Source: Blepharisma stoltei ATCC 30299
Lineage: Eukaryota > Protista > Ciliophora
DNA: 64,000 nt
Direction: 5' to 3'
NCBI GenBank assembly: GCA_965603825.1
Contig: CBFDEM010000053.1
Coordinates: 682,001-746,000, forward strand
Below, one piece after another: positions 7,776-49,190 of the stretch. Within the stretch, counting starts at the first letter, position 1; every line of letters starts with the position of its first letter. Position numbers and translations under genes: made by a program. Under the pieces are notes generated by a model, which saw only the letters and a program-made list of their open reading frames with translations, did not search any database and had not been told where the DNA came from.

Positions 7776-7800
7776 TAGTGTAAATTAATTATATATAATT

Positions 7801-12013: not shown

Positions 12014-14917
12014 ATGATGGATGTGAAATACAAAATTGAAATAAAGGGGATAGATGAGGACGAAAATATAATATCGACGGAAAAAATACGAGGGGAATCA
12101 CCTTCTGTTGTAGATATTGAAGCTGAAGAACAAGAAGAAAAATCTCAGAAATCAGAAAAATCTCAGGATTCAAAATCTCAGAAATCAGAAAAATCTGAAG
12201 GCTCAAAATCCCAAAAATCAGAAAAATCCCAAAAATCAAATAAATTATCATCTCATGCTAGTAAACCACCTGATATTGAGCTTAACAATTCTCAAGACCT
12301 GGGCGAGGCAGCTCAAGGCCCAGAAAACCCTGAACAACCTTCTAACCTTGAAGAAAACTCAAAACAAGATGAGCCAAAGCCCCAGAGAAAAATCTATAAC
12401 GCCTGCAACCTAAACAACTCCAATATCTATGAAGAAGATAAATCCAGGCTGGAAGAAGCTATTAAGGCTATAGAAAGCACAAAAGACACCGTTATGGAGG
12501 TTCTAAATCTATTCAGAGAAGAAGATAGCAAACTTTATAATAAACTAATCAGCAAAGGTGTTAAAGGCAAACACTTAAAGTTTTTGCTGTCAGAACTATA
12601 TCTGAGGGTAAATAGTTTCCCTGAAAGTGCATTGATTTTTTTATTGAATTCATATGACGAAGCTGGCTTGGCGAGACTGTTTTTGTCATTTTACTTAGAA
12701 TTTGATGCAAGTAATGATCGAAAAATGCAGGAGGACGAGCTGGAGCAGTGCATTGAGTTTTTAGGGCTGAAGGATTATATAGGAAAAGAAAAAATGATAG
12801 CTGCTTTGAAGATTATTGGTATAGACGCATCGAATAAACTTAGTTTTTTACAAGAAGGATCTGCTGCACAAAAAATCTTAAACGACGAAACTCGTAGCCA
12901 TCTATTTCAGATTTTAAAAGTCAAAAAAGAAAAACCTGCTGAAGATGCCCCACAAAGTATTATGAACATTGGTAAAGCTCTGTTGTTTCTTGGAAACAAT
13001 ACTTCTGACGATTATGTTGATTTTCCCAAATTCTTGCCTTATCTTATAGCTTGTTTCTTAGAAGTGGAAATCAAGTCATTTTTCAAAAAACAGAACATGT
13101 TCCGTATCCATCTAGGATTTCCTTATAAAGTCCTTGACAATGGAAAAGTCAAATTTGACCCGAATGGGCAAGTAGGTGGCTTATATCGTACATTTATTAG
13201 TTACCTAAGAGGAGAAGCAGATATAAACAAAGAAGTCCTTACTTACAGAATTGTCTCTAAAGCCCTTATTGCTTATAGATCAGAAGGATACTGTGAGTCG
13301 ATTACCCTCGAAGGGCTCGAAAGAATTCTAAAAAAAGTTAGAAACATGATGGATGTTGATTTAATTTCAGGACTTGAAAAGAAAAAATTTACCATGAAGC
13401 AAATTCTTCCTTTTCTCGCTGCACAGTTTGCCACTGAAAGCACATGAAATACAGTACAAGTCAAAAACACCATTGAAAAATATGACCATTTAGTTCATTG
13501 GGAAGGTGGTGGGAATATCTGCAAAATAAAAAAATCAAAAATCCATAAGCTTCTAGCAAAAGAAATAAGCCCTGATTCAAAAGTCCCAATTGATGTTTTG
13601 ACTCTAGCGCTAAACAAAGTGCTTAAAAAATTAATTCCAACCCTTAATTCTTCGGCTTCTTATCATATAGTAAAACAGCTTTCAAAAATTGATGGAATCT
13701 ATGACAAACCATCCAAACTTTTCTCAATGAAAAATATTTTTGAAGATGAAGACATATATGCCAGACTTCATGACTATACAATGAACACCAAATTAGACGT
13801 GTTTTTAGTAAACGTGCAGCACAAAGATGAGCTAAATTTATATAAATTATCAAGAAATTTAGACAAAGCTGAAGAAAAATTCCAGCTAATTTGCGATGGA
13901 AAATATAGGTTTGGAGCGGAATTAATAAATGCTATTCTGGATAAAGGCTTAAATAAAGTAGAAGAAGACAGTGAAAAACAGAAGGACGTACAGAGGAGAT
14001 TTATGGTAGAAAAAGCATTGAGATTTTTATTTGACAGGCCTGACGATTACAAATCCCAAAAAACTGAAGAAAAAGAGGTGACAAAAGATTTGGAGAAAAA
14101 TAAAAAAATAAGCAAAATTCATGAAGAAGATTCGTCAAAAAATAAAGCAAAAGAGCTGCAAAATGCCAATGAAAGACAAATGAAGCTGCAAGCGCAGTCT
14201 AATAAAATTGATAGACTTATCAGTGAGGTCGAAAACATAAAGCTGGCTAGAGCTTTAAATACAAGAGAAAGCAGCGCATTTCCGAATTCTAAAGAAGTCA
14301 ACCCTTTAGTCCTGCTAAATATGATTGATGGTGCCAACTCTGACAGTAAAGATCTAAAAAAGCTTAAAGAATATTTAAAAGAAAACGAAGACCAACTCAC
14401 TTATCAAGACGTAGCCAAATTTTTGACTATTGAAAGACTGAAAAAGACTAAATCAAAAAATGCCCAAAAACATAATCTTATTATAAATTCACAAAGCCGC
14501 TACCTTATAAACCAAAATAATATTGACGAATATTACGACAATTATGAAGACTTATCAGAAACAGAAGAAATTACCTCAGAAATCACTACAAAAGAAGAAT
14601 CAAAAACTGAAGAAGACGAAGAATCAGACTCTAAAGATGAGTCAGTCGTAGAAGAAAAAAAAGAAAAAAAAGTCCGAAATATTCGTGATAATGATTTTAA
14701 AATCAAATATGTAATGGGAAGTCTATATGACGAAGAAAAAGTGAAAAATATGAAACTTAAACCTTCTCCAAAAGATGCAGAATTTAAACTGAAACCTACC
14801 CCATTATTTGAAAAATTAAGAGAACAGAACAGAAGTGTGTTCTCTTCTGACCCTGGCCAGCCCAAAAAAGAAAGCAAAATTGAAAAATCCCGAGGCTGCG
14901 AGTGCATATTATTTTAA
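12014..14917 (+). CDS. Hypothetical 967-aa protein with KSQKSE repeats, EF-hand-like loop and C-terminal CaaX (CILF)
   Basis: Two track ORFs join in frame via UGA at 13445. Contains FDASNDRKMQEDEL and ends GCECILF*. Confidence 0.75.
12139..12240 (+). repeat. Coding 9-bp-period tandem repeat (KSQ/KSE)
   Basis: aaatctcag/aaatcagaa units repeated about 11 times. Confidence 0.8.
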
Positions 14918-14953
14918 AAATATTAATTTTAGCTATTTTTAATAGTGACAAAA

Positions 14954-16219
14954 ATGGAACCTTCAACTAGAAATAATCCGCCAGGGCCTCCAAGAAACCC
15001 TTATGCAATTTCTCACGTAGGAGGCCCTTCTATAGTAAATAAAAGACAAGTAAATGTAATAGGCGCCACTTTTTTAATTGATGCCAGATATGAAGTTATA
15101 GGGACTGTGGGCAGTGGCGCTTATGGGGTTGTGGTATCTGCAAGAGATACTCTTACAGGCCAGCGCGTCGCAATAAAAAAAATCGAAAAAGCCTTTGAGC
15201 ATTCTACGTTTACAAAAAGGACATTGAGAGAACTAAAAATACTGAGACTATTGGAGCATGATAATATTATGAGAATTGTGTCTATTCAGCTACCGCTTTC
15301 TAGAGAAGAATTTGACGAAATTTATGTAATAAGTGAACTTATGGAAACTGATTTAAGCTCTATTATTAAGTCTCCTCAGGTATTTTCTGATGAGCATTGC
15401 CAGTTCTTCTTATATCAAATCCTGATGGGCTTAAAATATATGCATAGTGCAGGAATAATCCATAGAGACTTAAAACCCAGAAACTTGCTGGTGAACTCAA
15501 ACTGCGATTTAAAAATATGTGACTTTGGGCTTGCGAGGCCTATTATAAGTGATTTAAAAGTATCAGGAGCTCAAATGACTGATTATGTAGCTACCAGATG
15601 GTATAGAGCACCTGAGGTCCTTTTAGCGTACAAAAAATATTCATCAGCTATGGATATGTGGTCAGTTGGATGTTTATTTGGAGAATTATTATTAAGAAAA
15701 CCTATTTTGCCAGGCAATGATTCTAATCATCAATTAGACTTAATATTCAATCTGATAGGAACACCTACTGATGAAGATATAGAATCCATCCCAAATCCTT
15801 TGTCAAAAGAAAAAGTTTCCAGATTAGCTAAAAAACCAGGAAAAAATTTCCAAACAATTTTTAGGGACGCGAATCCTGATGCTTTAGATTTACTAAGAAA
15901 AATGCTTATTTTTAACCCCGAAAAGCGAATCACAGTCCAAGCTGCCTTAGAGCATCCATATTTAGCCACTTTTCACTGTGAAGAAGACGAGCCAACTACA
16001 ACTCCTGTATCTATGTTTGATTTTGAGTTTGAAAAGCAGCCACTAATGATGAGGCAGCTTAAAGACTTAATTTACGAAGAAATTTTGCTATATCATTTCC
16101 CTCAAAAAAAGGAAGAGTATGAAAAACTTAAAGCAGAGTACGACAATCAGCAGCGCCAAGCCGGGAAAAGCATGCCACAAGAGTTTGAAGAAGAGGAAGA
16201 GGAAGAAGAGCTTAATTAA
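14954..16219 (+). CDS. ERK-like MAP kinase, TDY activation motif
   Basis: [41 protein letters not shown] domain; ATG at 14954. Confidence 0.95.
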   Translation: MEPSTRNNPPGPPRNPYAISHVGGPSIVNKRQVNVIGATFLIDARYEVIGTVGSGAYGVVVSARDTLTGQRVAIKKIEKAFEHSTFTKRTLRELKILRLLEHDNIMRIVSIQLPLSREEFDEIYVISELMETDLSSIIKSPQVFSDEHCQFFLYQILMGLKYMHSAGIIHRDLKPRNLLVNSNCDLKICDFGLARPIISDLKVSGAQMTDYVATRWYRAPEVLLAYKKYSSAMDMWSVGCLFGELLLRKPILPGNDSNHQLDLIFNLIGTPTDEDIESIPNPLSKEKVSRLAKKPGKNFQTIFRDANPDALDLLRKMLIFNPEKRITVQAALEHPYLATFHCEEDEPTTTPVSMFDFEFEKQPLMMRQLKDLIYEEILLYHFPQKKEEYEKLKAEYDNQQRQAGKSMPQEFEEEEEEEELN

Positions 16220-17173: not shown

Positions 17174-17539
17174 ATGTCAAAAGTCTTATTTCTGGTTGCC
17201 TTAGGAGTCTTCGTAGTTTCTGTACAAGCAGGTATTATCAAAGGTTATGGTGCAAACAAAGTCTCAGACTTTAAGAGTTCATACGAGCACGATGATAGGC
17301 AAAGATACAATGACGTAAAATGCGATGATAGAGATGAACATCATGAATATGATGAGCATAATGAATGCGATGAAAGAGACGATCATAGATATGACCATGA
17401 TGATAGAAACCATGGGTACAGCAATTACAGAGATGAATGTGGAGATGAAAGAAGACACGACCACGATGAAAACAGATACGACCACGATGAAAAGCTTTTT
17501 AACTACAGAGTTGAGAAAGATGAGCATTATTGCCATTAA
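17174..17539 (+). CDS. Secreted His/Asp/Glu/Arg-rich low-complexity protein (121 aa)
   Basis: Signal peptide MSKVLFLVALGVFVVSVQA followed by YDHDD/ECDE-type repeats and 4 Cys. Confidence 0.8.
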   Translation: MSKVLFLVALGVFVVSVQAGIIKGYGANKVSDFKSSYEHDDRQRYNDVKCDDRDEHHEYDEHNECDERDDHRYDHDDRNHGYSNYRDECGDERRHDHDENRYDHDEKLFNYRVEKDEHYCH

Positions 17540-21830: not shown

Positions 21831-21854
21831 TTTGGTGTGTTGTTTATTATAATC

Positions 21855-22769
21855 ATGGAAAATTTAGACGAGTTAGACAATCTAGCTGAAAAATATAAAT
21901 CTGAAGGAAATTTTGTAGAGGCTTTAAATGTTGTAGAAGAAGGCTTAAATATTAGAAAAACCAGGTTTGGGGATGACAGTCTCGAAGTAAGGAAAAGCTA
22001 TATCAAATTGTGTGAACTTTGCAACATTCTTGCAGCTTATTATCTCCAAAGAGATAATGCTGATTTAGCTTTTGATTTATTGAAAAGAGCTGAACTTTTG
22101 TGTGAAATGGACGAGCATACGAAGGCTGTAACGTATAATAACCTAGCCTGCTACTACAGGAAAACTGGAAAAGCAAGAGTAGCTTTAACGTATTTAGGTA
22201 AAGCTTTAGTAATTGATAATGATCAGCCAAACACTCATTTAAACTTGTGCGCGTCTCTTTCACAGATTGATAGGCATGAAAAAGCATTAGGCCATGCAAT
22301 GCAGGCTATTGTACTTTTACAAGATCTTTTTATTTCCTCTCTACAAGCCAATACAGGCTTTGAAGAGCATGCCCATGAGCTTGCTATTGCGTACCACAAT
22401 ATGGCAGTAGAGCTTGAATACCTAAAAAGAACTAACGAAGCTTTAAGAATGTACCAAAAAGCTGTAGAATTTGCCCAGAAATATTTGCCTGAGGATCACC
22501 CAATCAATGTAAACGCCCAAAGAATGCTATATAATGCTGCAAAAGATGAAGAAGAACATAGAGAAAAATTGTTGAACCGACGAGAATGTACATCAAAAAA
22601 CAACTTTTATAGTAAAAAGTTGGACAGAAAAGAGTCAAGAAGAGAAATTGATGAAGACAAAAATGCAGAAATGAAAAGAAAAGCATCGTCAACTGACCCA
22701 GGAGTAAGGTTTGGGCGGGACTATGAAAGAGGAAATGAAGGCCGAAAACCTAATTTAATTGAAATATAA
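21855..22769 (+). CDS. TPR-repeat protein
   Basis: AVTYNNLACYY, AIAYHNMAVELEYL repeats; ATG at 21855. Confidence 0.88.
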   Translation: MENLDELDNLAEKYKSEGNFVEALNVVEEGLNIRKTRFGDDSLEVRKSYIKLCELCNILAAYYLQRDNADLAFDLLKRAELLCEMDEHTKAVTYNNLACYYRKTGKARVALTYLGKALVIDNDQPNTHLNLCASLSQIDRHEKALGHAMQAIVLLQDLFISSLQANTGFEEHAHELAIAYHNMAVELEYLKRTNEALRMYQKAVEFAQKYLPEDHPINVNAQRMLYNAAKDEEEHREKLLNRRECTSKNNFYSKKLDRKESRREIDEDKNAEMKRKASSTDPGVRFGRDYERGNEGRKPNLIEI

Positions 22770-22793
22770 GTATAATCTTCAGGAAAAATTAAA

Positions 22794-24274
22794 ATGGAAT
22801 CTGATTTGATAACTTCACAGACGTTTATAGACCTCGGGATTTCTAAAAAATTCATTTTAGACGCTCTTGAATATTTTAATTTTCAATATTCCACCCAAGT
22901 CCAAGCCCAAGCTATTCCTAAAGCTTTATCAGGCGAAAATTTAATTGTCCAAGGCAGAAGTGGGACAGGGAAAACTTTAGCATTTACTTCAATTTCTTTA
23001 GAAGCCATAAACCCTTCTGAAAATAAGCCTCAAGCCTTAATAATAACCCCAACCAGAGAGTTAGCGAACCAAATTTTTGATTTTCTCAATGAAATGACCT
23101 TTACGTCTGACACTCCAATATATTCATTAATGTGCTGTGGAGGCTATTCAAGAGGAGACACTATAAAATCTCTTAATCAAGGCATTCACATCGTGGTGGG
23201 AACATTAGGGAGAATAAAAGACATGATCACTTATAATTATCTTTCTGTCGAATTTCTAAAAATTCTTATCATGGACGAAGCTGATAAAATTATATCAAGC
23301 TGCAGCTGACTTTTTCAAAAAATCCCTAAAAATACCCAAATTTTGGCATTTTCAGCGACTTATTCTGAACAGTCTTTATCTCAGCTTAAAAAATATATTG
23401 AAAATCCTCAAATTATAAAATGTCAAGAAAATGATACAAAGTCAAAAGAACTGAAAGAATTTTATGCAGAAAGTGACGCGACTATGCAGGCAAAAGTAAC
23501 TAAAGTTTTGCATATTTTAAATACAGTGCCTTTTCATCAAGCTATTATTTTTTATAATAATAAAGGATCAGGAAATGATATGGCAGCTAGATTAAGAGGG
23601 TCAGGGTTTCCTTGTTTATTTATATCAGGGGATATGCCTCAAAATCAAAGGATTGAGGTTATGAGGTCATTGAGGTTTTTAGGGATCAGGGTTATGCTAA
23701 GCACAGATTTGGTATTTTTTATATAGACTAGTAGAGGAATTGATGTACTTAATGTAAATTTGGTCATAAATTATGACATCCCAGACAGATCTGACATATA
23801 TATCCACAGAATAGGCCGCGCCGGCAGGTTTGGGACGCCTGGAATTGCAGTTACCCTGGTATCAGGGCAGTCTGATATAGAAAAACTGCAAAAATTCGCA
23901 AACCCAGAAAATTTCGATTTTTTTACAAAGGTAAGAAAAATATATAGGAAAATTTTATACCAATTGAGCTATTAGAAGACGAAAAAGAAGCCTTCAAAAA
24001 AATCACTAGCGATGGGAAAGAATGGGTAGATGTTCCTATTGAAGCATCAATTGATAATAAATTTACAATTCCAATTGATATAGAAGAAGATGAGTGGGTA
24101 GATGTGACAGCTGAAGAATCAATTGAAAAAAGGTTCACAATTCCTATCACTCTAGAAGATTTATCAAATTTATCATGCAGCTTGTGCGCTGAACTTGGGT
24201 TTTCCACACATTGCCACTGCAATACATGCAAGGAAAATTATATTTATATTACTAAATATTTAAAGCCAGAATAA
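22794..24274 (+). CDS. DDX20: DEAD-box RNA helicase, DDX20/Gemin3-like (~482 aa)
   Basis: [48 protein letters not shown] at 23307; introns 23712-23726 and 23931-23947. Confidence 0.78.
23712..23726 (+). other. 15-nt intron
   Basis: gtattttttatatag; removal gives motif V STDLTSRGID. Confidence 0.92.
23931..23947 (+). other. Putative 17-nt intron
   Basis: gtaagaaaaatatatag; removal opens a 108-codon C-terminal frame ending at 24274. Confidence 0.65.
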
Positions 24275-25626: not shown

Positions 25627-27709
25627 TTACTCACACGCAAACTTATAATCGAAGCTGGAAAGTGCAACCCCAAAAGCTTGTAGCGGTGAAAAAGGCCATT
25701 GGAAGTCCATGTTAAAGTTTTGGTCCCCAACCCTTCCAAATTGCATATAAACTTTATTTTCGTCTCTGTCATCAATAAGCTGGAAATTTTTTACTGATGC
25801 TCTATCAACTCTTCCATTGAAATTTAACACAAATGCTTGGACATCTACTTATCAATTACGTTCATTCCATTTTGGAGGCTTATTAAAGAAGCAAAACATC
25901 CCTGAGGTGTTTCCTGCGTTATATTGTTTAAGCATGCCGTCATCTTTCTGCTATAAAAATTACATTCATAGGTTTCCACACATAGTGATCCCCAGCGTTA
26001 TTTACAGCTGGTATTAAAACTCTCATTTTTCTAGGTCCTTTGGAACCAAGAATATTTGATTGCTAAATATCATTTACATATAAAACAATTCCTAGTTCTT
26101 CTCTAGCGTTCATAGGGTTTGCTCCTTTATGTTTAGGATTAATGCCAGTGTCAAACAGGTGGAATTCAGTTCCAATGAAATTTGAGCGGACTTTTCCTAA
26201 ATATGATGGAGATTTTACTGAAAATTCTTTTTGGTTGCTGGTTATCATATAATTTGAAGTTCGGTTTCCTCCTCTTTTTTTGCCTGCAAGCAAAAAGGTC
26301 ATCCCATCTGATATATGCAAATAATATTTCGGGTATAGTCTTCCAAAGCCTGCTTTTTCTCGTCTGATATTGCATTGGAGCATTATTCCTCGAGGGATTG
26401 GATTTGTCAGGAATTTTTTCATATCAGTCATTTCTTGGGCAAGGACTTCACGGACATTTATGTTTGGCTGTCGAGGGATTTGTTGTTGGCGGGCTGAGTC
26501 AGGTCTGTTAAGAGGGTGAGTAGGCGCTGGAGGCTCTTGTCGTTCATCTTGACGCTTGCCTTCTGGCTGACGATTGCCATCTGGGGTTGGTTTTTCTATT
26601 TGAGCAGGGCGCTGTTCTTCTCTTTGAGGCGGTTTGTCGTCTATTGACTGCCGTTGTCTATTTGGCTCATTTGTAGGTGTCCTTTCATTTTGGTAGCGAT
26701 CAGGCTGGGTTTCTTGAACTGGCTGTTTAGGTGCCTGAGGAATAGCTTGCTCAGAAATGCTAACAGGCTTTGCTGCATCAAAAGGGACATATTTTGGCTC
26801 AGCTGGGACAAACTTTTCAGTTGCGGTTGTAGCCCGAGTATCAGGCTGAGTAAATTGACCGTCATTTGGCCTCTCATATGGCGCTGGAGGCGGATTTTTG
26901 GACTCTTCTAGCTGTTTGTGGATTCCTTGTAGCGTTTTACTTGGTGTATGTCTTGACCCTTCATCAAGTTTTACTTCTTCAAGCTCATCGTCAGCTTTAA
27001 ACACAGTCCTATCAGCCTTTATAGGTGCCGGCAAATTATCAGTTTGTTTAGCTTTTATAGGGCCAGGCTCATATGCGAAATTTTTAGGTGCAGTAAATCC
27101 TCTTAAGTCTCGATTGGCGTTTAAATCTTTTTCATTAAAAATTTGGTTTGAATATAAATAAGATCCTATCCCACTTTGCTGCTCTAGCCCTTGGGCAACC
27201 ATAGAGCTTACACCAGGCATAAACATATTGCTTGATTGCACTTGAGTAGTTCCAGACGATCCGCGGCTTATTAATTTGTTTCGTTGCATTTCTAGCATTT
27301 TCGCTCGCATTTGGGCATTGCTGCTGCCTGGTCTTGCTGAGCTTGTATCAGGACGTGGTTCTTGTCGTTCAGGCTCTTCGTAGTTGACAAAGCCAATTTT
27401 CTCGCTATTTTCTTTTTTTACAGGCTGGAAAGTTTGTTTTGGTCCTCCCATCCCATCAATGACGTAGCCGCTCGTAACAAATTCGCTTGGCTGGGGTGGA
27501 TAATAGGTAGGTGGGGGTGGGTTGGTGTAAAAGTGGCTTTGCTCGACTGGCTGAAGGTTTTGATACCTAGGCTTTTCTTCATATTCAAAATCTCTATCGA
27601 TTTGAGCAGGCATAAACGAATCAGCAGGCTGTTGATAATAAGGAGGAGTTCCTGGCTCTTCTGGATCTGAAAAGCTATCTGAATCTTCTAAGTATTCACG
27701 CTGAAACAT
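25627..27709 (-). CDS. Tubby-like protein (~678 aa) with P/Q-rich N-terminus
   Basis: GKVRSNFIGTEF, GPRKM, PPKWNE..LNFNGRV..ASVKNFQL, QFGRVG, KFACE*; three tiny introns. Confidence 0.93.
25845..25859 (-). other. 15-nt intron
   Basis: gtaattgataagtag; restores PKWNEHVQAFVLNF. Confidence 0.92.
25948..25963 (-). other. 16-nt intron (NAGNAG acceptor)
   Basis: gtaatttttatagcag; restores the frame. Confidence 0.8.
26063..26077 (-). other. 15-nt intron
   Basis: gtaaatgatatttag; restores IVLY-QSNILGSKGPRKM. Confidence 0.92.
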
Positions 27710-27909
27710 TTTTTATAAATTAATGAAAGAAATTTAAAGTAAAATGAATAATTTAATATATACTCCTAATAAAGTTTGCTTAGATATCCTATATTTTTTA
27801 TTTTATCTATAAATAAATAGAATTTTAAATTTACTATATTTAAAAATATATTAAATATGAATATATTTTATCGATTCTGTTACAAAAAGCATGTCTCAAA
27901 TATGGTTAA

Positions 27910-29775
27910 TTAATATATATTGTCATCTTTTTCGTCAAACTTTATCATCACCTTTACATTATTTCTTGAATTTCTAGCTGGCCTATACTGGATAGCTGGT
28001 ATCTGTGGACCTTCAATAGTAAAACTTTCCCCCTCTTGATTTTCACCTGAAATAATTTTTAATGTCCCTGCTTCAATGTCTAAAACAACACACAGCTTTG
28101 AAATGCCTTTGCCAAGCCCATAAGAATACAAACACCCTACAATATTTTTATGCTTAGGCGAAGACACTCCAATTTTTAATTGTCCAGATTTTTCGTCTGT
28201 AGAAAAAATTGCATTAGAAATTACCTTGATTTTCCATATGTGCTTTCCAAAATAATAAGGGTACTGGGCAAGAATAATCCCAGCCCTTTCGAACTGGACT
28301 CATTTTTCATCTCCACGTTTATTGATTATTGCAAGATTTTTACAGATATTTTCATCAATGTCTTGCAAGTCAAAGGTGGAAACTGAGGTAATTTCGCTTC
28401 ATGGGCTTTGTTTAGTATCTTCTTCTGATATAGCAGCTACTCGAAACCTATAGGTGGTTTTTGGGAGAAGATCAGTTATAATACAAGTGTGGGCTTCTCC
28501 TTTATATACCTGTCGAAATTGTTCAACGCCACGGACTTTGCTTCCAACGCCATATTCTAATGAATAAATGCTTTTTCCTGAAGTATAAGTCCAGGAAAGC
28601 TTGATTTCTGAAGAAGTTTGCTGTTTCAATATAAATTTCCTAGGCTCTGACGGGTCGGAATTAGTAAGATCTGTATTTGTGTTATTTCCTACATATGAAA
28701 AAGGATTTGGGCTAGAAATATTGCTTCTTCTGTAGTTTGAAATAGAATTTAGCGGAGACTGAGTATTATTTAATGAAGGTTGTGGAGATGGGAAGCTGGA
28801 ATATCGGTCCTGAGCAGGAGAATTATTTATTTCAAAAAAATTCCCTGAATTTATTCCTTTTAAAATCGCTGATATATCAATGCTTTGAAACTGGGCATCT
28901 ACACTGCTCATATGAGATTCAGAGACTGACAAAGAATGGTCAATCATTTTACTTAAATATTTAAGGCTTTCAAGCATAGCACTTTTTGGGAGCTCGACTG
29001 CAGTTTCTATTAATTTTACTGCAGCGTTGATGCTTAATAATTTTCCATTAATTTCTTCTCGATTGAAATTAAGCTGCTGGATTTTTTTTTCGTTAAAATT
29101 ATTGATTTCGTCTATGCATTCTTCTTCTTTTAGCTCAATTGCGCGTTTAGCTATTTTAAAAGCTTCTTTTATTTTATTTATCGCTTCATTTTTAGCGTAT
29201 TCTATGTCAGGCTCTAAAACTTCAATATCATTTAGTTCAAAAATAAGTTTTTTTCGGAGTTTTTCTAATTTATTTTGTTTGCTTTTAATTTCATGCAAAG
29301 TCTCTGAAAAAGCGTCTTCAATTTTTAATATTGGGTGGCTACTATGCATAGATAAGCAGTATTTGCATATTGATTTTCAATCTTCTGTACAAAAATAAGC
29401 CAAATTTTCCTTATGGAATTCGCAGTAATTAAAATTCGTGATTTTTGATAGCTTAATAGGTGCTTGCGAATGTGATTTATATGCTCCTAAAGAATGAATA
29501 TAGCTATAGCACTCACTGCACAGTAATATTTTGCATGTTTCACAGCTAGTTTTTGCAGGTCTTGTAGTGCATCTTTCACAATTCAAAGGATCTGAAGTTT
29601 CCTCCAAAGCAAGCAAAATTCAGTTATGTGTGGTTTCGGACTGTGATATGCTGATATTACATAATGGGCATGAATTTCCAATATGACTAAAACACACCGA
29701 ACTGTAGCAGCATGGCAAAATTGTGGGGTATATCTGTATTTGATTACAAACTGAACATTTTATTTCCTGTTCCAT
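27910..29775 (-). CDS. TRIM-like RING / B-box1 / B-box2 / coiled-coil / FN3 / SPRY-like protein (~621 aa)
   Basis: Single frame with four UGA=Trp. Degenerate RING CSVC..LPCC..CPLC, two B-boxes, FN3 (LSWT..DLLPKTTYRFRVAA..SPWS), SPRY-like tail (GKHIWKIKV..IGV..VVLDIEAGTL). Confidence 0.82.
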
Positions 29776-29808
29776 TTATTAAATTAACACAAAGCAAATA
29801 TAATTATT

Positions 29809-30633
29809 TTAATTCTTGCTTCTTTTTATTCTTGAGATTAGTGTCTTGCATTTTTTACAATGGTAAAGAATTTCTTGGAATTCCCCGCTCCCATAGCAAG
29901 TTCTGCAGCATAATTTTTGCCAGCTAAATAAAAATTACAATGATATTGATGGAAATTTGAACTTGACTGTAGTAGAAACTTCGCACTCACATTTAGGGCA
30001 AAATCCTTTAGAAGTTACATAATTCATCGGATCGCCATGAGCTGCACAAGTTTCTTGCAGATTGGGCTTGTCCCGCTGTGAATCAGGCTCATTTTCGTGG
30101 GTGCTTAGAGTAGGCTTTGTGTTAGCTGAGTCTTTTATTTTTTCTGATATTTTTGAGACGGTTTTATGTGTGATATAGCTTTTAGTTTCTGTGATTAATG
30201 ATTGCTTAATAGAGTTTTTTGTGGAATCTTGGGCAAAGGATTTCAAAGGCTCTTGGCATTTTTCAGCGTCTTCGAAATCGGAATCACTGCTCAGGATTTC
30301 GCCTGAGTCATAGGTGAAATTTAAATCTAAACTTCCTACTCCATGATCCCAAAAATCCAGAGATGTTTCAAGCCTTGGTAACCCATCAGCAGGAACTTTG
30401 TTTAATGCTGACACAAACGGCTGGGTTTTATTGAGATCGTTGATGATCATTGTCGGTTGCCTTGTATGAGAACTCTCTGAGTTCGCGCTTTCGCTGGACT
30501 CCAAGTATGTATCTACTTCTTTCTGAATAGCTACTTCTTTTTGGTCTTTTTCTTTTATTTTATCCTTATTTCGATAAGATCTTTTTGGCTCCAAATGCAG
30601 AATTGCATTTCTTGCATATGCCAGATTTTTCAT
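29809..30633 (-). CDS. LITAF-like zinc-ribbon protein (~269 aa)
   Basis: FCPKC..V.T.V, then after a 15-nt intron FWQKLCC..YHCKKC. Confidence 0.75.
29924..29938 (-). other. 15-nt intron
   Basis: gtaatttttatttag; contains in-frame TAA. Confidence 0.88.
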
Positions 30634-30964
30634 TTTGGATTAAAAATTATTAACCTTAGCATCAGTATTTAATAATTGAAATTCTTATAAATTTTATATT
30701 ATCCATACAAGATTTTAAATTTAGTTTATTTTTCTATTATAGGATAATGCAAAGATGAATATATAATAGAATGTTGCAAGATTACTAAATGGCTATATAT
30801 AATCCAATAATTTATTCGAAAATTTCCTTAATTATGGTGCATTGGGAGTTTTTGGGCACATCTGTGCGGCTCTTAGTGGACGCTCGGCTTCGTATTTTCA
30901 GATTCTGACATATTGTCTATTAGGGACATATACTGGTTCTTAAAAAGGCCTAGGGTATCATATA

Positions 30965-32221
30965 ATGAAGTGCTGGAAACAAGATTGCATAAAAGAATCC
31001 ATATATTTGTGTCAATGCTCTGAACAAGGAATTTACTCATGCGAAACTCATTATATTGACCATCTGCAACTTAACATCCAACAAAGACATCTGCCTCAGC
31101 CTCTAAAATTCAAGCCAAGCCAAAATGCAAAGCAAGCTCTTTGCTCTTATCTTAAAAGTAGGAACGCAGAGTTAAATACCCTTCAATCAGAAGCAATTAG
31201 TAAAATATCCCAAAAAATAAAGAAACTCAACACTCAATTAAAAATAGCAATTGATGAAATTACAAGAGTAAAAAAAGAAAATCAAGCATTGATAGCCAGA
31301 ATTGTCCAGGCTGAACAAATATCTCTGCACGATGACTTGGCAAAGATTTTAGCTTTAGACCCTGATGAAGCCATTGAAATTATTCAAGATAATATTTGTA
31401 GAATTGATATTCGAAAAATTCCTAAATATATTGAATGCAATTTAGATACTTTTGATTATTCAATTAGTGGAAATGAAATCGATATTTTTCGTGATAATTC
31501 AAAAATGTTATTAAGAGTAAGTCTGGAAGATCTTACAATTAAAGAAGCTGAAATAGCAATGAACCAAAATACCAATACTCATTTATCAATTTGTAAAATC
31601 TCAAATAGTAATCTTATTTGTATTGGAGGTTACAATCCTTATACTTCAACAGCATTTATGATATATCCTGATAATAGCATTAAATATCTTGCTAATTTAT
31701 CACAGCCATGCGGATTCTCAAGTGCTATTTATTATAAGAATGAAGTATATGCATTTGGTGGTTACAATAATAGTGGATACGTAATGACTCCTGAGAAATA
31801 TAACATCTCAGAAAATATATGAAAGCCTCTCCCTAAAATTAGTGTAGGCGCAAATTGTTGCACCGGCTTTGTTTATAAAAATAAGATTTTCTTTGCAGGA
31901 ATTCAACATTCAAAAGTTTATATTTACGATATTCAACAAAATTCATACTCAGTAATTCCAATCGGGTTAAATCCAAGTAAGGGCAAGGTTTTAATTTTAA
32001 ACAGAAATATTTTTTATGTGATTGAGTCTGGCTCACATATCTATGAAGTTGGTCTTAATGACCTAAATTGGAAAGCTGTTGGAAGCTGTGAACCATTGAA
32101 TAATTATCCGGTATCTCATTTTGTTGAATTTAAAAATTGTATTTACTTTCTGAATGAAGGATCATATATTTATAGATTTGATTTAGATTCGAAATCAGTC
32201 CTAAAATTGAAGAAAATATAA
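30965..32221 (+). CDS. N-terminal Cys/His zinc motif + coiled coil + Kelch beta-propeller protein (~418 aa)
   Basis: CWKQDC..CQC..CETH..H; ICIGGY and VYAFGGY Kelch repeats; UGA at 31820 at the Kelch Trp position. Confidence 0.82.
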
Positions 32222-32481
32222 TTTAAGGAAATAGAATTTTAATAATTAATTTCTTATTAATTTGCTGCCTTTTTATAAAAGAAATAGCTAAAACGTGAAA
32301 TATTTATAGATTTCTAATAGTTTTTAAAGAAAAATATATCGGTTAAAATGTTTAATCTAATCCACAATAATTATACTGCTAATACAATCTGACCGAAATA
32401 GGTTTACTTCCTATTTCTCAAATTTATAAAATTAAATAAGCTATTTCAAAAATGTCAAGAAAATTAAAATTACTAGCACCG

Positions 32482-33255
32482 CTAGGCTTTATTTGATGCT
32501 ATGAATTTTTTATTAAGCAATACAATATCATCTTTCAATCCTGGGTACTTTTTAGCATGCTTTTTCATTATTTCAACTAGCCCTCTCACATATTCTTCAC
32601 TGGCCGAAAAAGTGTCCATTCTATCCATTTCTCTACTAAACGTCGACAAATTTCTATTTTTCCCTTTTTCAACAATCACATTTTTTGCTTTTCTTTTAGC
32701 CAAATTTCTGGTCTCACTTAAATTTGAAAATTTTGTTGCCCCAAGATCCCGCATTGTGCTTTTTTTCACTTGATCTCTATTTAAATCTTTTGAAATCTCT
32801 AAACATGATGTTGTCCTTAAAGATTTACTTTTAGACCTGTGGCCTGGCAATAGGATTTTTCTTTTTAAATTATCGATCCTGTTTTCTAGCTGTTCTCATT
32901 CATTTTCAGTGTTTTCTCTATTTGTTTCATAATCGGTTCTATCATATGAAGTTTTTTCAAAAGGTTCAATTAATTCTGAGAGCTGCTTGACCTTTGGATG
33001 TTTGTAAGTATAGGAATAATTTAAGCTGGGAGAAGGATCAATATCTTGATATACATTCATAGAAAGCTCTTCCATTGGTTTAGAAATGTGAGGCTCAGGG
33101 ATTGCTTTTTCTGTTGGCCTAAAAGATTCAAAGATTTCTGGTTCAAGCGGCTCAGGCTGGAGATTTAGTGGTCTTTCACCATATAGGTAAGAATTATCTC
33201 TTAAGTAAGGGATTCTGTCATCTTCTTTGTAGAATTGGCTTGAAGCATTTATCAT
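32482..33255 (-). CDS. Hypothetical protein (~257 aa)
   Basis: Two track ORFs joined in frame by UGA at 32896. Confidence 0.7.
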
Positions 33256-33759
33256 GATTAACGAATTTTAAATTTAAAAAGAATTCGTTCTTTCATAAGT
33301 CCTAAAAATTAATGTAATTAGCATATAAACAATTTTTATTTAGACTAAGATTTCAGCATTTCTTTTGCAATAATTTTGATAAATTTATATTGAGGAATAA
33401 GAAAATATTATTGGACTTTATCTATAAGTTATCATAGAAAATCCATTATTATAATTTTCATAAACAATTTTGCTTTGTTAAAACTTTTAATCAATTGTAT
33501 GCACTATTTTTATATATGAATTCACCCTTCTTGTAAGCCAAGCAAGCTATATCTTGCACACTACACGCCTTCATATTATCTTTTAGTCAAAAATAAAAAG
33601 TTACCAATTCAATATTCATATCTATTAAAGTAAATCCTATGATTTTAACTCATATTCCTCTAGCACTAATATCTATTTCCTTATCAGCTCACCACTATTA
33701 TCTCTTCGTTAAAAATTATTCCCATACTTAATTGCCAATCTATCAGAAAACGTCTCACC

Positions 33760-33796
33760 CTCCATCTTTTAATTCCATCCAACGCAATAAACAGAT
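33760..33796 (+). promoter_or_regulatory. Putative promoter motif of collagen-like gene 1
   Basis: ctccatcttttaattccat...aaacagat; compare 17112-17143. Confidence 0.4.
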
Positions 33797-33828
33797 AGGT
33801 ACGATAATCTCATAACAGGATAATTAAT

Positions 33829-34374
33829 ATGGTCAAACTGGCAATTCTGATGATTTTAGCTTTAACTGCCCTTGCATTCAGACCTAATTTCAAAAGCTCG
33901 TTTATAGAGGGAGAGCAGGCAAGCTGTGATAAGAAGCAGGAAGAGCAGCCATGCGAAGAAGCAAAACCAGAAGAGCAGCCATGCGAAGAAGCAAAGCCAG
34001 AAGAACAAAAATGCCAAGAAGAGCAGCAGGTTAAAATTGTATATGAAAAAGGAGATAAAGGAGAAGTAGGAGAACAAGGATGCCAAGGACCACAAGGCCC
34101 ACCAGGCCCACAAGGACCTGCAGGGTGTAAAGGAGAAAAAGGAGATAAAGGAGAAAAAGGAGACAAAGGAGACCAAGGAGAACAAGGCTGCAAAGGAGAA
34201 AAAGGAGAAGTAGGGGAAGCTGGACCTTGTGGAATCCAAGGGTGTAAAGGAGAAAAAGGAGATTGCGGAGATAGAGGACCAGCAGGGGTCATTATTCGAT
34301 GCCAAGAAATCGATGAAGTTGTAGAGCAGTGCAAATGTCAAGAAAAAGACGATAAGGCTGCATCAAAATGGTAA
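33829..34374 (+). CDS. Secreted mini-collagen-like protein 1 (27 Gly-X-Y, charged)
   Basis: Signal peptide, [10 protein letters not shown] repeats, uninterrupted Gly-X-Y with 6 Cys, Cys/acidic tail. Confidence 0.92.
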
Positions 34375-34709
34375 GCCAAAGGTAAAATCATAACATATTC
34401 TTACTGATATCGCGTTTTATTTATTAATAATAATAAATTTATAGCCACATATAAATTTAATAATATTTCCAAAAATTGATTTTTCTCTAAAAATGGCACT
34501 TATACAAATAAGCCAATTTTTACGAATTTTTTGAAATATAAAATAATAATTCTTCTATTTTGCAATAATTTTTAATTTATTTAAGATTTTATATGTGATT
34601 TATTTCCAATTTAAAATGATAAATAATACTATTTTTCTACCTATCAGATACTTAAAAAATTATTTAATACCGATTGCCTATTCTTCACAAAATATACTGT
34701 GATACTTAT

Positions 34710-34749
34710 CATTTTTTTACTATTTGCAAGCTTATTAACCTCAATAAAA
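34710..34749 (+). promoter_or_regulatory. Conserved upstream element of collagen-like gene 2
   Basis: catttttttactatttgcaagcttattaacctcaataaaa, aligning with 35535-35576. Confidence 0.6.
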
Positions 34750-34769
34750 TAATGGTTATATAAATTTAA

Positions 34770-35234
34770 ATGGTACGAGTTGCAATTCTGATAGCGCTCT
34801 CTGTAGCTGTTTTAGCTGTTAAACCTGGCTTATTGCAACAGGAAGATATTCTTCATGCTGGAAGTGGATGCTGCCCAACTGTGGAAACAAAAACTGTAGA
34901 TTTCGATGATTGTGTTGTAACCAGACAGGGATGCCAAGGACCACAAGGATGCCAAGGACCACCAGGATGTCCAGGACCTCAAGGACCTAAAGGGCCTCAA
35001 GGATGTCCAGGACCAAAAGGACCTAAAGGACCAAAAGGAGACACAGGAGACTGCGGCCCAGAAGGATGCCAAGGACCAGAAGGATGCCAAGGACCAAAAG
35101 GACCACAAGGCTGTCCAGGCCCACAAGGTCCTCCTGGAGAAAAAGGTTGCCAAGGTCCAAGAGGATGCAGCGTTAAAATTATTGAGTACGATGACGACGA
35201 ATGTGGATGCGAAGAAGCTATAGTGCACCAGTAA
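34770..35234 (+). CDS. Secreted mini-collagen-like protein 2 (27 Gly-X-Y)
   Basis: Signal peptide, GCCP, uninterrupted Gly-X-Y with 10 Cys, DDDECGCEE tail. Confidence 0.92.
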
Positions 35235-35534
35235 CAGATAAAACTAAATAATTATTTTTAAAAAAATGTTCCTATCAGTTAAAAAAATGTAAAAAGGGAT
35301 GGAGAAAATCAAACATAAATAAAATATAATAAAAGTTTAAGAAAATTATGCATGGCCACAGCCTAGTGAAGAGAATAAGACTAATAATTTAAGCTGCTTT
35401 ATTTTTAAATATTTCTAATTTTACCATAAATGCTTATTTTTACTCATATTTTCAATACAGTTATAAAAAACAAGCCATCTTTTGTCCATAAAAAAATATT
35501 TAAAATAAAATACTTTCTGGTAGGGTTGTTTTAC

Positions 35535-35576
35535 CATTTTTTTCACCATTTGCAAGCATATAACCACCAATGAAAA
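35535..35576 (+). promoter_or_regulatory. Conserved upstream element of collagen-like gene 3
   Basis: catttttttcaccatttgcaagcatataaccaccaatgaaaa. Confidence 0.6.
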
Positions 35577-35591
35577 ATCTAATATAATCAA

Positions 35592-36056
35592 ATGGCCAAG
35601 CTAACAATTCTGATTGCTCTCTTCGTTACTGCATTAGCTGCTAAACCGAGCTTAATCCAAGGAGAAATCTTAACTTCTGACTGGTCTGGGTGTGGATGCG
35701 AATGTGATGAAATTTATGATCAACCAGTTAATATTAGAGGAACCGTTAAATTAGTTCAAGGTGCACAAGGATGCCAAGGACCTGCTGGCCCATGCGGACC
35801 TCAAGGCCCTCAAGGTCCACCTGGCCCACAAGGAGATGAAGGATGTGCAGGACCTCAAGGAGACCAAGGAGATGAAGGATGCCAAGGACCACAAGGACCA
35901 TGCGGACCTCAAGGCCCACCAGGACCTAAAGGAGAAACTGGATGCCCAGGAATTCAAGGTCCAAAAGGATGCAAAGGCCCAACAGGAGATAGAGGATGCC
36001 CAGGAGTTGTTGTTAATGCATGCAAATACTGTGAATGCGATGAGCACGCTGAGTAA
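35592..36056 (+). CDS. Secreted mini-collagen-like protein 3 (28 Gly-X-Y)
   Basis: Signal peptide, GCGCECDE, uninterrupted Gly-X-Y with 8 Cys, CKYCECDE tail. Confidence 0.92.
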
Positions 36057-36248: not shown

Positions 36249-37262
36249 TTAATTGCTCCCTTCTTCATACCTATCTCTATCACAAAACTCTGGGTACTTG
36301 CATCTACAAGGCCCTATTCTAATCTTCCTAAAAGTAAGTGAAATCCTCCTTTTCCTATGTACCAAATTCCCATTCACAATATCATGCCTTCTCTGTTGTA
36401 TTGAGTGTTTCCACACATATCTTGCCTCATCAGTCATTGCAAGCATTGATCTTGGCGGTATAAACTGATTAAATTCCCTCCCATCTGTATTCCGAAAGCA
36501 CATACTTATAGGCCCAAGTATACTGATACAGGCTAAAATTTCTTCAAATGGAGAATGACTGTCTATATGTGGAGGAATACTGTCGCCTGGCTGATAGTCA
36601 TTTACTGTAAGCTGGTCATAGGAAATTCCAAATTTCAGCTGCAAATCAGTTAAAAGAGGATTTATTCAGGCTGGGAAGCCAGAAGACGGGGTTTCTGGGT
36701 TGATGGAGTTAGCTCCATATATAAAATCGAACCCAAAATGCTGGACTCTTCTATTAGCAAGAGGATTCCAAGGCAATTTGTCGAGCTCTTCTACTAAAAG
36801 CTGCTCATATTCAGCAGAAATAAAGTCTTTTTCTATGATTAAGCCTGGGACTGGGACATTTTCATAGCATATAGAGTCCTTCCCAAGCTGCAAATTGTGC
36901 TGGATTGGGGTGTATAAGACTGTGAAAGGATGCGGTTTTGGGGAAAATGGTAAAATTGGGTAAGAATTGTTGATGGTTTCGTATGCTATGGCTGCAGATT
37001 CTAAAGACTCATAACACGCATAGCCGTAATTAATCCCAGAAAGGATAATTAAAGAAGACAGCGGCCCATACTGTAAAAGATGAGATCTAAGCACATGATA
37101 ATCATCCTCAGAGCCTTCCGAATAATGCAAAATGAATAATCCACAATTTGGCCTTTCCTCTCAAAGTTCGATTTTTTCGTCTCTTTTTATAAGCTCAATC
37201 CCTTTGATTTTTTTCTTTTTCAAGCCTTTCAGATACACCTTCATCCGCTTATCCTCACTCAT
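36249..37262 (-). CDS. ALKBH8: ALKBH8-like tRNA dioxygenase (RRM / AlkB / Zn cluster, no methyltransferase domain)
   Basis: RRM-like N-terminus, RRVQHFG, DQLTVNDY..IPPHIDSH, WKHSI, RISLTFRK, CRC.YP..CD; two UGA=Trp. Confidence 0.88.
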
Positions 37263-47463: not shown

Positions 47464-48483
47464 ATGAGATATTTGTTTATACTCTTATTTGCCCTCACAT
47501 GCTTGTCCTATGCCAAGCCTCAGCTAAAATTCAACGCAACCGGCCAATTCAAAATAATGCAGCTCACCGACACTCATTACGACTACTTTAACCAAGACAT
47601 CCCTCAAACCCTCAACATGGTGACAAATTTCCTGCAATGGGAAAAGCCAGATTTCGTCGCATTTACAGGCGACCTTATCACAGGCTACCTCTGGAACGGC
47701 ACTGCAGACTGGTTTTACGACCGTTGGAGCCCTCACGCCGCTCTATTAACCAAATTTGGTGTCCCATGGGGCTATGCTTTAGGAAATCATGACGGTGAAG
47801 CAGACCTAGACCGTCGCCAATGTGTAGAACTTGACATGACAGCTCCTTTTTCCCTCTCCAAAACAGGCCCAGCCTATATGGGAAACTCTACATTTTATGT
47901 CCAAGTCTATGATAAATTTGGCAAAAAACCTTTATGGAATTTATGGTTTTTTGACACCGGCTCACAGGTCTGTTATGGAATCCCAGGCTGGGGCTGTTTA
48001 ACCCATGAAGCTGTCCAATGGTATATAAGCAACGAAAAAGGCCTCCCTGGGCTTGCATTTATGCATATCCCTCTTGACGAATATTTGCAGATGTACAATT
48101 TACAAGCTACAGCTGGATTTTATGAAGAAATTATGGCCTGCAGCAGCTTAAATACAGGCTTGTTTTCAGCTTTTAAGGCTAAAGGTATGGTAAAAGGTGT
48201 CGGCTGTGGGCATAATCATGAGATTGATTTAGAAGGGTATTTTGCAGGGCTTTATTTAGCCTTTGGCAGGAAATCAGGGTATGGCAGTTATGGTCCTGCT
48301 CCTGATATGCAAAGAGGCGTCAGGATGTGGGTGATTAATGAGGACTCAAGCTTTTATACTTATATAAGGCAAGAAGATGGGTCGATTATGCAAAGGACTA
48401 TAAATGACTTATCAAACCATACAGCAATACAAGACTATTGCATGTGGGCGCAGTACAATCTTCCAAACTACCACATCTTATAA
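47464..48483 (+). CDS. Secreted calcineurin-like metallophosphoesterase (DCR2/PAP29-like)
   Basis: Signal peptide; FKIMQLTDTH, FTGD, GNHD, FMHIPL, GHNH, GYGSYG. Confidence 0.92.
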   Translation: MRYLFILLFALTCLSYAKPQLKFNATGQFKIMQLTDTHYDYFNQDIPQTLNMVTNFLQWEKPDFVAFTGDLITGYLWNGTADWFYDRWSPHAALLTKFGVPWGYALGNHDGEADLDRRQCVELDMTAPFSLSKTGPAYMGNSTFYVQVYDKFGKKPLWNLWFFDTGSQVCYGIPGWGCLTHEAVQWYISNEKGLPGLAFMHIPLDEYLQMYNLQATAGFYEEIMACSSLNTGLFSAFKAKGMVKGVGCGHNHEIDLEGYFAGLYLAFGRKSGYGSYGPAPDMQRGVRMWVINEDSSFYTYIRQEDGSIMQRTINDLSNHTAIQDYCMWAQYNLPNYHIL

Positions 48484-48512
48484 GCGATAATTTTTAATAA
48501 ATCCTCTAATAA

Positions 48513-49190
48513 ATGCTAGGCAGAATTCTAAAAATCCCTATAAGATGGGGATACACCTATCATCAGGGCAAAATTGCTGCTTTTGAAGGTAGAGACACTG
48601 AATGGTCTAGAAAAGATTTAAAAGAAGCCTCAGAGATCCATCAAGAAGTCCAGCAGGACCGCACACTGCAAAAACTCATGCATGCGTGGAAGCACCCTCT
48701 AAAGCTTAAGCAGGAATATAAAGCTAGAAGAGTTGAAAGGGAAAGTAAGATTCCTCCAATGCCTGAACAGGAGTCTAAGCTGGTTGTACACTCTCAAGTG
48801 CCCATAACTTCGGTAGCCACACCTCGAGATGACCAGATTTTCGCTGTAGTTAGACTTGCAGGGCTGCAGTACAAAGTGACCAAAAATGATTTAATTATTG
48901 CTGAAAAATTACCGTATGAGGTAGGACAACAATTCACGTTGGACTCTGTAATGCTTGTTGGAACTCCTAGCTACACATTGATTGGAAGGCCACTTGTAGA
49001 AAAAGCTCAAGTTTATATGACTGTCGAGGAACAAACTTTAAGCGAAAAACTCATTGTTTTCAAGAAAATCAGGAGGAAACATTATAAGAAGCAAAAAGGG
49101 CACAGGCAGGAATTAACGATTTTGAGGGTTGAAAAAATCGAGCATGAAGTTGAAGATAAGCAAGCTTCTCTTTTTATTCCAGTTAGCTAA
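48513..49190 (+). CDS. MRPL21: Mitochondrial ribosomal protein bL21m
   Basis: FAVVRLAGLQYKV, IGRP, VFKKIRRKHY...GHRQ. Confidence 0.93.
   Translation: MLGRILKIPIRWGYTYHQGKIAAFEGRDTEWSRKDLKEASEIHQEVQQDRTLQKLMHAWKHPLKLKQEYKARRVERESKIPPMPEQESKLVVHSQVPITSVATPRDDQIFAVVRLAGLQYKVTKNDLIIAEKLPYEVGQQFTLDSVMLVGTPSYTLIGRPLVEKAQVYMTVEEQTLSEKLIVFKKIRRKHYKKQKGHRQELTILRVEKIEHEVEDKQASLFIPVS

Follow-up and report, generated by a model that had tools for sequence, protein, structure and literature searches.

Short, cysteine-rich collagens in the ciliate Blepharisma stoltei: a compact gene family that may code for secreted, disulfide-cross-linkable rods

Introduction

Triple helices of the collagen type are familiar from animals and bacteria as well as from phages and giant viruses. 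Among the short collagens, the cnidarian minicollagens have a central helix of about 12-16 triplets and carry polyproline flanks and terminal Cys-rich domains of the CX3CX3CX3CX3CC pattern. The helices of the nematocyst minicollagens N-COL 1-4 are 14-16 Gly-X-Y triplets long (PMC2289959). Our literature searches, in which collagen or minicollagen was combined with Blepharisma, ciliates, encystment, cyst walls or extrusomes, returned no paper on a ciliate collagen family. Here we describe three adjacent genes coding for small Cys-rich collagens (genes 1, 2 and 3) in a 64,000-nucleotide stretch, hereafter called the window, of Blepharisma stoltei ATCC 30299 (contig CBFDEM010000053.1, positions 682,001 to 746,000), as well as the 13-gene family to which they belong. 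Judging from the sequences, we consider it moderately probable that this family, which our searches found in Blepharisma only, provides secreted, hydroxyproline-independent short collagen rods, which can be cross-linked by disulfides and build an insoluble matrix.

Similar to the cnidarian minicollagens, the B. stoltei proteins are small and secreted, possess one short uninterrupted helix with Cys-bearing flanks and are encoded by a multigene family. Unlike the minicollagens with their 14-16 triplets (PMC2289959), they have 27-28 triplets and carry Cys residues inside the helix. Runs of four or more Pro residues are absent from all 13 family proteins, and so is the six-Cys pattern, whether searched for in its strict or in a loosened form. 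The original prediction, which was made from the DNA of the window alone, had set these proteins apart from canonical minicollagens, and helix length, flanks and Cys domains all bear this out. The two groups show no sequence relationship beyond the G-X-Y repeat; what they have in common is a proposed mechanism, in which short rods are polymerised through disulfides to form a tough wall, and not family membership.

Other described collagens each share some of these features. C1q, which is encoded by three tandem, co-oriented genes and consists of short chains with about 80 helical residues, interrupted helices and an N-terminal Cys linking the chains, offers the strongest parallel for interpreting three tandem genes as the source of a heterotrimer. 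In contrast to C1q, the B. stoltei trio lacks a gC1q or lectin head, and its 27-triplet length is common to 11 of the 13 family genes. Scarce Pro in the Y position and, in gene 1, dense KGE/KGD motifs are reminiscent of Scl1/2, BclA and phage tail-fibre collagens, from which the B. stoltei proteins differ by their eukaryotic signal peptides, the lack of a V-domain or BclA_C domain, their fixed length and their richness in Cys; the repeat number of bacterial collagen-like proteins varies widely. Nematode cuticle collagens are likewise numerous, small and secreted, and form a disulfide-linked insoluble extracellular layer. Their helices are interrupted, their Cys residues cluster outside the helix and their N-terminal part contains an RxxR processing site, whereas the B. 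stoltei helices are uninterrupted, and an RxxR motif precedes the helix in none of the 13 family proteins and is found nowhere in the products of genes 1-3. Finally, Cys residues at the helix end, for example in G-V-S-V-K-C, and in the tail resemble the interchain cystine knots of collagen III and the FACIT collagens, and by analogy the helix-end Cys residues could staple three chains together and fix their register. Spacing and motifs differ from those knots, though, and most of the B. stoltei Cys residues lie along the helix itself.

Results

The trio occupies positions 33829-36056 of the window and consists of three co-oriented open reading frames (ORFs) on the + strand, which code for proteins of 181, 154 and 154 amino acids (aa), each end with TAA, are read without introns, contain no TGA and are separated by AT-rich spacers of approximately 360-400 bp. 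The Pfam Collagen profile PF01391 matches the three proteins with E-values of 2e-16, 2e-14 and 7e-15 and bit scores of 53-60, above the curated cut-off of 27.2, and with uninterrupted runs of 27, 27 and 28 triplets they are collagen-repeat proteins by this definition. No other Pfam domain was detected by the Pfam scan, and neither a gC1q or lectin head nor a V domain or BclA_C was found in genes 1-3. Gene 1 (33829..34374, +) encodes a charged-type mini-collagen with a signal peptide covering about aa 1-16, a Cys- and acidic-residue-containing N-domain with a repeated unit, a helix at aa 75-155 (DNA 34051-34293, +; 27 triplets, 10 KGE/KGD motifs and 6 Cys), the junction VIIRCQEID and an acidic CxC tail. 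Genes 2 and 3 encode mini-collagens of a Pro/Gln/Cys type. In gene 2 (34770..35234, +), the signal peptide and a short Cys-containing N-domain are followed by a helix at aa 54-134 (DNA 34929-35171, +) with 27 triplets, 10 Cys residues, nine of them in the X position, and 15 X-position Pro residues. The product of gene 3 (35592..36056, +) has a signal peptide, an N-domain with the motif CGCEC and a helix of 28 triplets with 8 Cys residues at aa 57-140 (DNA 35760-36011, +).

A recount by script agreed with the original prediction in giving 27, 27 and 28 triplets and 6, 10 and 8 helix Cys residues, predominantly in the X position, and yielded 13, 15 and 14 Cys residues for the whole proteins. The N-termini, which start with a short basic n-region followed by a hydrophobic core 12-13 residues long and an A-x-A-like end rich in Ala, were judged by eye to be signal peptides; a C-terminal hydrophobic segment, membrane anchor or retention motif was not found in genes 1-3. 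Directly after the helix, each protein has a V/I-rich segment (VIIR, VKII and VVVN, respectively), and the proteins end in acidic CxC tails of 14-26 aa. The gene arrangement, the signal peptides, the Cys-bearing N-domains, the V/I strands and the tails thus all stood up as first described, and so did the division into a charged chain (gene 1) and two chains of the Pro/Gln type (genes 2 and 3). Pairwise identity among the three proteins is 37-40%.

Contigs assembled from three public sequencing runs cover parts of the three coding regions and of the neighbouring gene and leave the spacers uncovered, a placement that fits low-level transcription, although the depth of these contigs cannot be used to rank the genes. 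No run that is recorded as RNA contains the trio stretch. One run contig spans the whole helix of gene 2 with approximately 97% identity and no insertions or deletions, and of the eight differences listed for it, five affect the third position of a codon. This indicates that a close strain or allele has also kept 27 triplets. The signal peptides, the selection on the genes described below and the restriction of run contigs to the coding parts show that the + frame of genes 1-3 is the real one, and the ORFs on the opposite strand of the collagen DNA are by-products of the repeat. The trio as originally observed is real and its genes are functional.

Genome-wide searches were performed with the 41.46 Mb, 64-contig macronuclear assembly of B. 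stoltei ATCC 30299, in which the window lies on contig 53. A search with gene 2 and a separate PF01391 search (hits above the cut-off) identified the same 13 loci, which therefore represent the entire detectable collagen complement of the organism. These are the trio on contig 53, a second trio in the same order on contig 4, a near-identical pair located 12 kb from that second trio, a pair on contig 3 and single genes on contigs 34, 48 and 50. Exactly 27 triplets are present in 11 of the 13 members, the exceptions being gene 3 with 28 and the divergent contig-50 gene with 20 triplets. The equal helix lengths, which had been taken as a property of the trio, are hence a feature of the family. 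Whereas the family helices align without gaps, the length of the N-domains varies between 25 and 57 aa and that of the tails between 11 and 119 aa, and some paralogues have long Ser/Asn-rich, mucin-like tails. Gap-free helices of 27 triplets next to such variable flanks point to a strong, family-wide constraint on helix length, which is upheld in DNA where slippage should readily occur. Compared with its paralogue, gene 3 has gained two N-terminal triplets and lost an internal one, which results in 28 triplets, while the 18 triplets downstream of the conserved Cys triplet are unchanged. An X-position Cys is found at triplet 9 in 11 of the 13 family members. An exact-sequence look-up in a public protein collection did not find the window trio or the contig-3 and contig-34 genes and retrieved the contig-4 pair only (CAG9311460.1 and CAG9311459.1, unnamed or uncharacterised); the window collagen genes may therefore be unannotated in public records.

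The second trio (contig 4:599910-602071) retains the 1-2-3 order and is part of an inverted block duplicate of window positions 27422-36056. The duplicated block takes in at least three upstream genes, with approximately 27.4-32.0 kb of the window corresponding to approximately 610.0-604.9 kb of contig 4; the near-identical collagen pair at contig 4:613760-615214 is without a counterpart in the window. In the family tree, each gene of the window trio pairs with the corresponding gene of the second trio. One clade (support 91/96) unites genes 2 and 3 with the contig-4 pair, and gene 1 groups with the charged-type genes found on contigs 3, 34 and 48. Between the two trios, the synonymous divergence (dS) is 0.7-1.4, indicating that the duplication is old, and the ratio of nonsynonymous to synonymous divergence (dN/dS) is 0.13, 0.23 and 0.30 for the three pairs, indicating purifying selection on all of them. 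The positions of the helix Cys residues are near-identical within each duplicate pair and differ among the three types.

Upstream sequences also differ between gene 1 and genes 2 and 3. Genes 2 and 3 are preceded by a 23-nt element of the same type, TTTTTYACYATTTGCAARCWTAT, located at 34713..34735 (+) for gene 2, where it ends about 35 nt before the ATG, and at 35539..35561 (+) for gene 3. When up to two mismatches were allowed, this element was found genome-wide only in one probable chance match and in the promoters of six genes of the Pro/Gln/Cys clade, in all of which it ends about 35 nt upstream of the start codon; besides genes 2 and 3, these are the two corresponding genes of the second trio and the near-identical pair on contig 4. 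Gene 1 has a different upstream block (33716..33828, +), which is conserved with its contig-4 paralogue and contains TATCAGAAAAC, CCATCTT at 33762-33768 (position -67) and AAACAGATA. A CCAT[ACT]TT motif at -95 to -40 is present in 11 of 18 genes of a wider set, which was drawn up from the leader peptide, and, among the other long ORFs of the window, in 2 of 45 (Fisher p 3e-6, which is optimistic as the pattern was picked after the sequences had been viewed).

A profile built from the first 30 residues of the leader (consensus MVKLAIL..LSLTAFA..P..FKS.FLE) finds only 12 of the collagens and four other genes genome-wide. These four (contig 56:185873-186904, contig 63:526182 onward, contig 12:355180 and contig 21:185242) code for secreted acidic low-complexity proteins, in which the Pfam scan detected no domain. 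One is an Asp/His/Cys-rich repeat protein of 343 aa, the C-terminus of which is similar to the collagen junction, another is a Glu/Ala/Thr-rich repeat protein longer than 536 aa, and the remaining two are smaller acidic proteins. Within the window, an Asp/His-rich secreted protein of 121 aa (17174..17539, +) is preceded by CCATTTT at -60 and, as is gene 1, by AAACAGAT. It has no Pfam domain and is not a collagen, it carries an FKSSY motif like the FKSSF of the gene 1 leader, and it may belong to the same gene battery as the collagens. Taken together, the shared leader and upstream motifs look like those of one gene battery for one secreted product.

The two types also differ in how their helices might be stabilised. 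Gene 1 and its relatives have 8-11 KGE/KGD motifs, little Pro and almost no Pro in the Y position, while genes 2 and 3 have 14-15 X-position Pro residues, abundant Gln in the Y position and a low charge. Y-position Pro is found in 1, 5 and 4 of the 27-28 triplets of genes 1, 2 and 3, respectively, and in 1-6 of 27 across the family. The sole gene of the genome with a PF13640 domain (prolyl-4-hydroxylase type) is located at contig 62:240767-241603; its product begins with MADLRLFDE, has no signal peptide and is probably cytosolic, and a prolyl hydroxylase targeted to the endoplasmic reticulum was not detected in the genome. Due to the scarcity of Y-position Pro and the lack of a signal peptide on the only PF13640 protein, we infer that the helices are probably not stabilised by hydroxyproline, similar to those of bacterial collagens. 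The dense KGE/KGD charge pairs predicted for gene 1 can stabilise a triple helix without hydroxylation.

The original prediction had gone on to propose, from the matched helix lengths, that the three chains co-assemble in register as a heterotrimer and are cross-linked laterally. In its strict form, this model makes genes 1, 2 and 3 the sources of the A, B and C chains of one dedicated, obligate heterotrimer, with C1q as the parallel. Following a rule from published work on collagen peptides, we counted axial contacts between a charged residue in position Y of one triplet and one in position X of the next triplet over all 27 ordered combinations of the three chains. The gene 1 homotrimer has 30 favourable Lys/Arg-Asp/Glu contacts and no repulsive ones, and that of its contig-4 paralogue 25 and none. 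In trimers that mix gene 1 with other chains, at most 17 favourable contacts are formed, and the best ABC arrangements reach 9-10; three ABC trimers total 27 contacts, compared with 37 for one homotrimer of each chain. With 30 pairs as a homotrimer, gene 1 most likely forms a homotrimer, as far as can be read from its sequence, and genes 2 and 3 may form homotrimers or mix with each other.

Some observations do speak for pairing of the three chains. The order and orientation of genes 1-2-3 are kept in the old contig-4 copy, and all six genes are under purifying selection; tandem duplication, however, gives a tandem order by default. When the chains are placed in the register gene 3/gene 1/gene 2, four of the five Y-position Cys residues abut a Cys in the X position of the chain that follows. 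In the contig-4 trio, this register shares the first rank, at three pairs, with one arrangement that is not ABC. By permutation, the Cys complementarity of genes 1-3 gave p = 0.05 when ABC arrangements only were considered, but was not significant (p = 0.24) over all arrangements and both contact geometries, and Cys residues are in register among the chains at triplets 9 and 16 only. Furthermore, of the five acidic residues that gene 3 has in the X position, four are preceded by a basic Y residue of gene 2 one triplet earlier, although charge matches between chains are inflated, since their charged zones were inherited from a common ancestor. A complementarity in the net charges of the three helices (-4, +2 and -3) was also considered and found unconvincing. 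Pieces of all three coding regions are present in the same public runs, which would fit joint use, whereas the upstream block of gene 1 differs from that of genes 2 and 3. Since the helix length is shared across the family, including solitary and paired genes on other contigs, and the charge contacts favour the gene 1 homotrimer, an ABC heterotrimer is possible but not the best reading of the sequences, and we regard the obligate heterotrimer as unlikely.

Discussion

The mechanism that we propose for the short collagen rods would start with the conserved leader, which would direct the chains into the secretory pathway, where three of them would trimerise to a triple-helical rod of 27 triplets. 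With 81 residues and the rise of 0.286 nm known from general collagen geometry, such a rod would be about 23 nm long and would carry short V/I-rich, Cys-bearing segments at both ends. Rods of the charged type (gene 1), most likely homotrimers, would be held together by about 10 inter-chain KGE/KGD salt bridges per chain, and those of the Pro/Gln/Cys type (genes 2 and 3) would rely on X-position Pro and expose up to 10 Cys residues per chain to the solvent. Through the exposed Cys residues of the helix and of the end domains, the rods could then be joined side by side as well as at their ends, giving rise to an insoluble matrix, which would probably be built together with the few hyper-acidic secreted proteins that have the same leader and upstream motif.

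By analogy, we conjecture that the most plausible site of such a matrix is the wall of the resting cyst or a secretory organelle, of which it could form the content or the capsule. B. stoltei carries pigment granules and mucocyst-like organelles. It also forms multilayered resting cysts (PMC8891572), and chitin has been localised on cyst sections of the related B. undulans in work cited in the same review. Our literature searches found no molecular data on Blepharisma cysts, pigment granules or mucocyst-like organelles.

Several points weigh against such a matrix of cross-linked rods. Triple helix formation, the chain composition of the trimers, disulfide polymerisation and the structure that is built are all inferred from the protein sequences, and the location, be it the cyst wall, an extrusome or another site, is proposed by analogy. 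The family member on contig 48 lacks helix Cys residues, so that these are not essential to the family. In addition, the homotrimers of genes 2 and 3 hold few stabilising pairs (4 and 3, respectively), and the charge-pair count is a crude rule that involves no energy calculation. The public runs that cover the genes are three small runs of one 2022 study, which are only guessed to be RNA, have a low depth and carry no condition labels. Lastly, the absence of the family outside Blepharisma is weakly shown, as generic collagens swamp the searches.

One might speculate further that the matrix is a composite of length-calibrated, disulfide-locked rods of approximately 23 nm in two chemical types and of hyper-acidic Asp/His/Cys- and Glu/Ala-rich proteins, all with the same leader and upstream motif and arisen independently of the animal extracellular matrix and of nematocyst walls, with the 1-2-3 trio pairing in a fixed register. 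By analogy, this composite could, for example, be a layer of the cyst wall, the capsule of an extrusome or even a mineral-binding matrix. We consider this more detailed scenario tentative and, as a whole, rather doubtful.

A different explanation would be that the proteins are soluble or surface-displayed collagen stalks, which act as a coat, an adhesive or a pellicle mucus in feeding, predator defence or cell pairing, and whose Cys residues form bonds within a chain or a trimer only. In line with this, the proteins were found to have neither a membrane anchor nor a retention signal nor any additional domain, short collagen spacers serve many secreted proteins, some paralogues have the mucin-like tails mentioned above, and the depth in the public runs, which probably stem from vegetative or mating cultures, is low but not zero. 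But there is no globular head that such a stalk could present, up to 30 exposed Cys residues per trimer would be hard to satisfy inside one molecule, and the strict rod length together with the Cys residues at both ends point to a lattice. Stalks of this kind are, in our opinion, quite unlikely.

Searches of a collection of 5.8 billion proteins with the family profile and with gene 2 returned thousands of generic bacterial and phage collagens, and one B. stoltei protein was the only family member among the hits. A central family member has, in its N-terminal region, no words in common with any sequence searched. When the N-terminal part outside the collagen repeat was used for an exhaustive profile search, the only hits were this B. 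stoltei protein and a single repeat protein, which is spurious. A scan of metagenome contigs found no orthologue, just unrelated long collagens, a scan of viral contigs found no relative, and an exact look-up of gene 2 found no contig that encodes it. The exact gene 2 protein is present in the ESM Atlas, where its model is poor (predicted local distance difference test, pLDDT, 0.40) and its neighbours are clusters of generic collagens. Among the environmental sequences were two from low-GC metagenome contigs, a 105-triplet helix with 50 Cys residues (SDBT01018673.1, 1410-3095) and a 238-triplet helix with 56 Cys residues (Ga0214919_10024135, 728-3082). Due to these long Cys-studded helices, the claim that Cys inside the helix is atypical for collagens holds in the sense that it is unusual, but not that it is unique.

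That the family is a recently acquired collagen-like gene of bacterial, phage or giant virus origin, which expanded neutrally and has no specific structural role, appears very improbable to us: the best helix matches are indeed bacterial and phage collagens with 40-60% identity, and prokaryotic collagens typically show the charged GEK/GDK style seen in gene 1, but these matches are low-complexity repeats without the leader or the junction, no relative was found among viral contigs, and the genes have eukaryotic signal peptides, ciliate gene surroundings with UGA read as Trp, conserved family-specific upstream elements and dN/dS values of 0.13-0.30 over an old duplication.

The whole collagen complement of this ciliate is thus one compact family with a fixed rod, free flanks, a Cys-dense helix surface and a leader and promoter in common with hyper-acidic proteins. 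If the rods indeed form a wall or capsule, they would provide a first molecular handle on the biology of heterotrich cyst walls or extrusomes and would be a clean case of convergence with the nematocyst minicollagens. Small hydroxyproline-independent rods of defined length would also be attractive as models or design scaffolds.

Neighbouring genes and genetic code

The trio is adjoined by a gene on the minus strand (36249-37130) for an AlkB/ALKBH8-like 2-oxoglutarate- and Fe(II)-dependent oxygenase (PF13532, E 5e-13). Its in-frame TGA at 36666-36668 is read through, which shows that UGA codes for Trp in this genome. This agrees with the description of the B. stoltei macronuclear genome as 41 Mb on 64 telomere-to-telomere contigs, with UGA encoding Trp and introns of 15-16 bp (bioRxiv 10.1101/2021.12.14.471607). 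TAA was taken as a stop codon here, because genes were predicted with translation table 4 in the same work (bioRxiv 10.1101/2021.12.14.471607). Pairs of long ORFs on the same strand, about 25 nt apart, are also seen at window positions 6243-8265, 13598-16219, 21837-23309 and 47464-49190, and are probably single genes that are split by an in-frame TGA (Trp) or by an intron of 15-16 nt.

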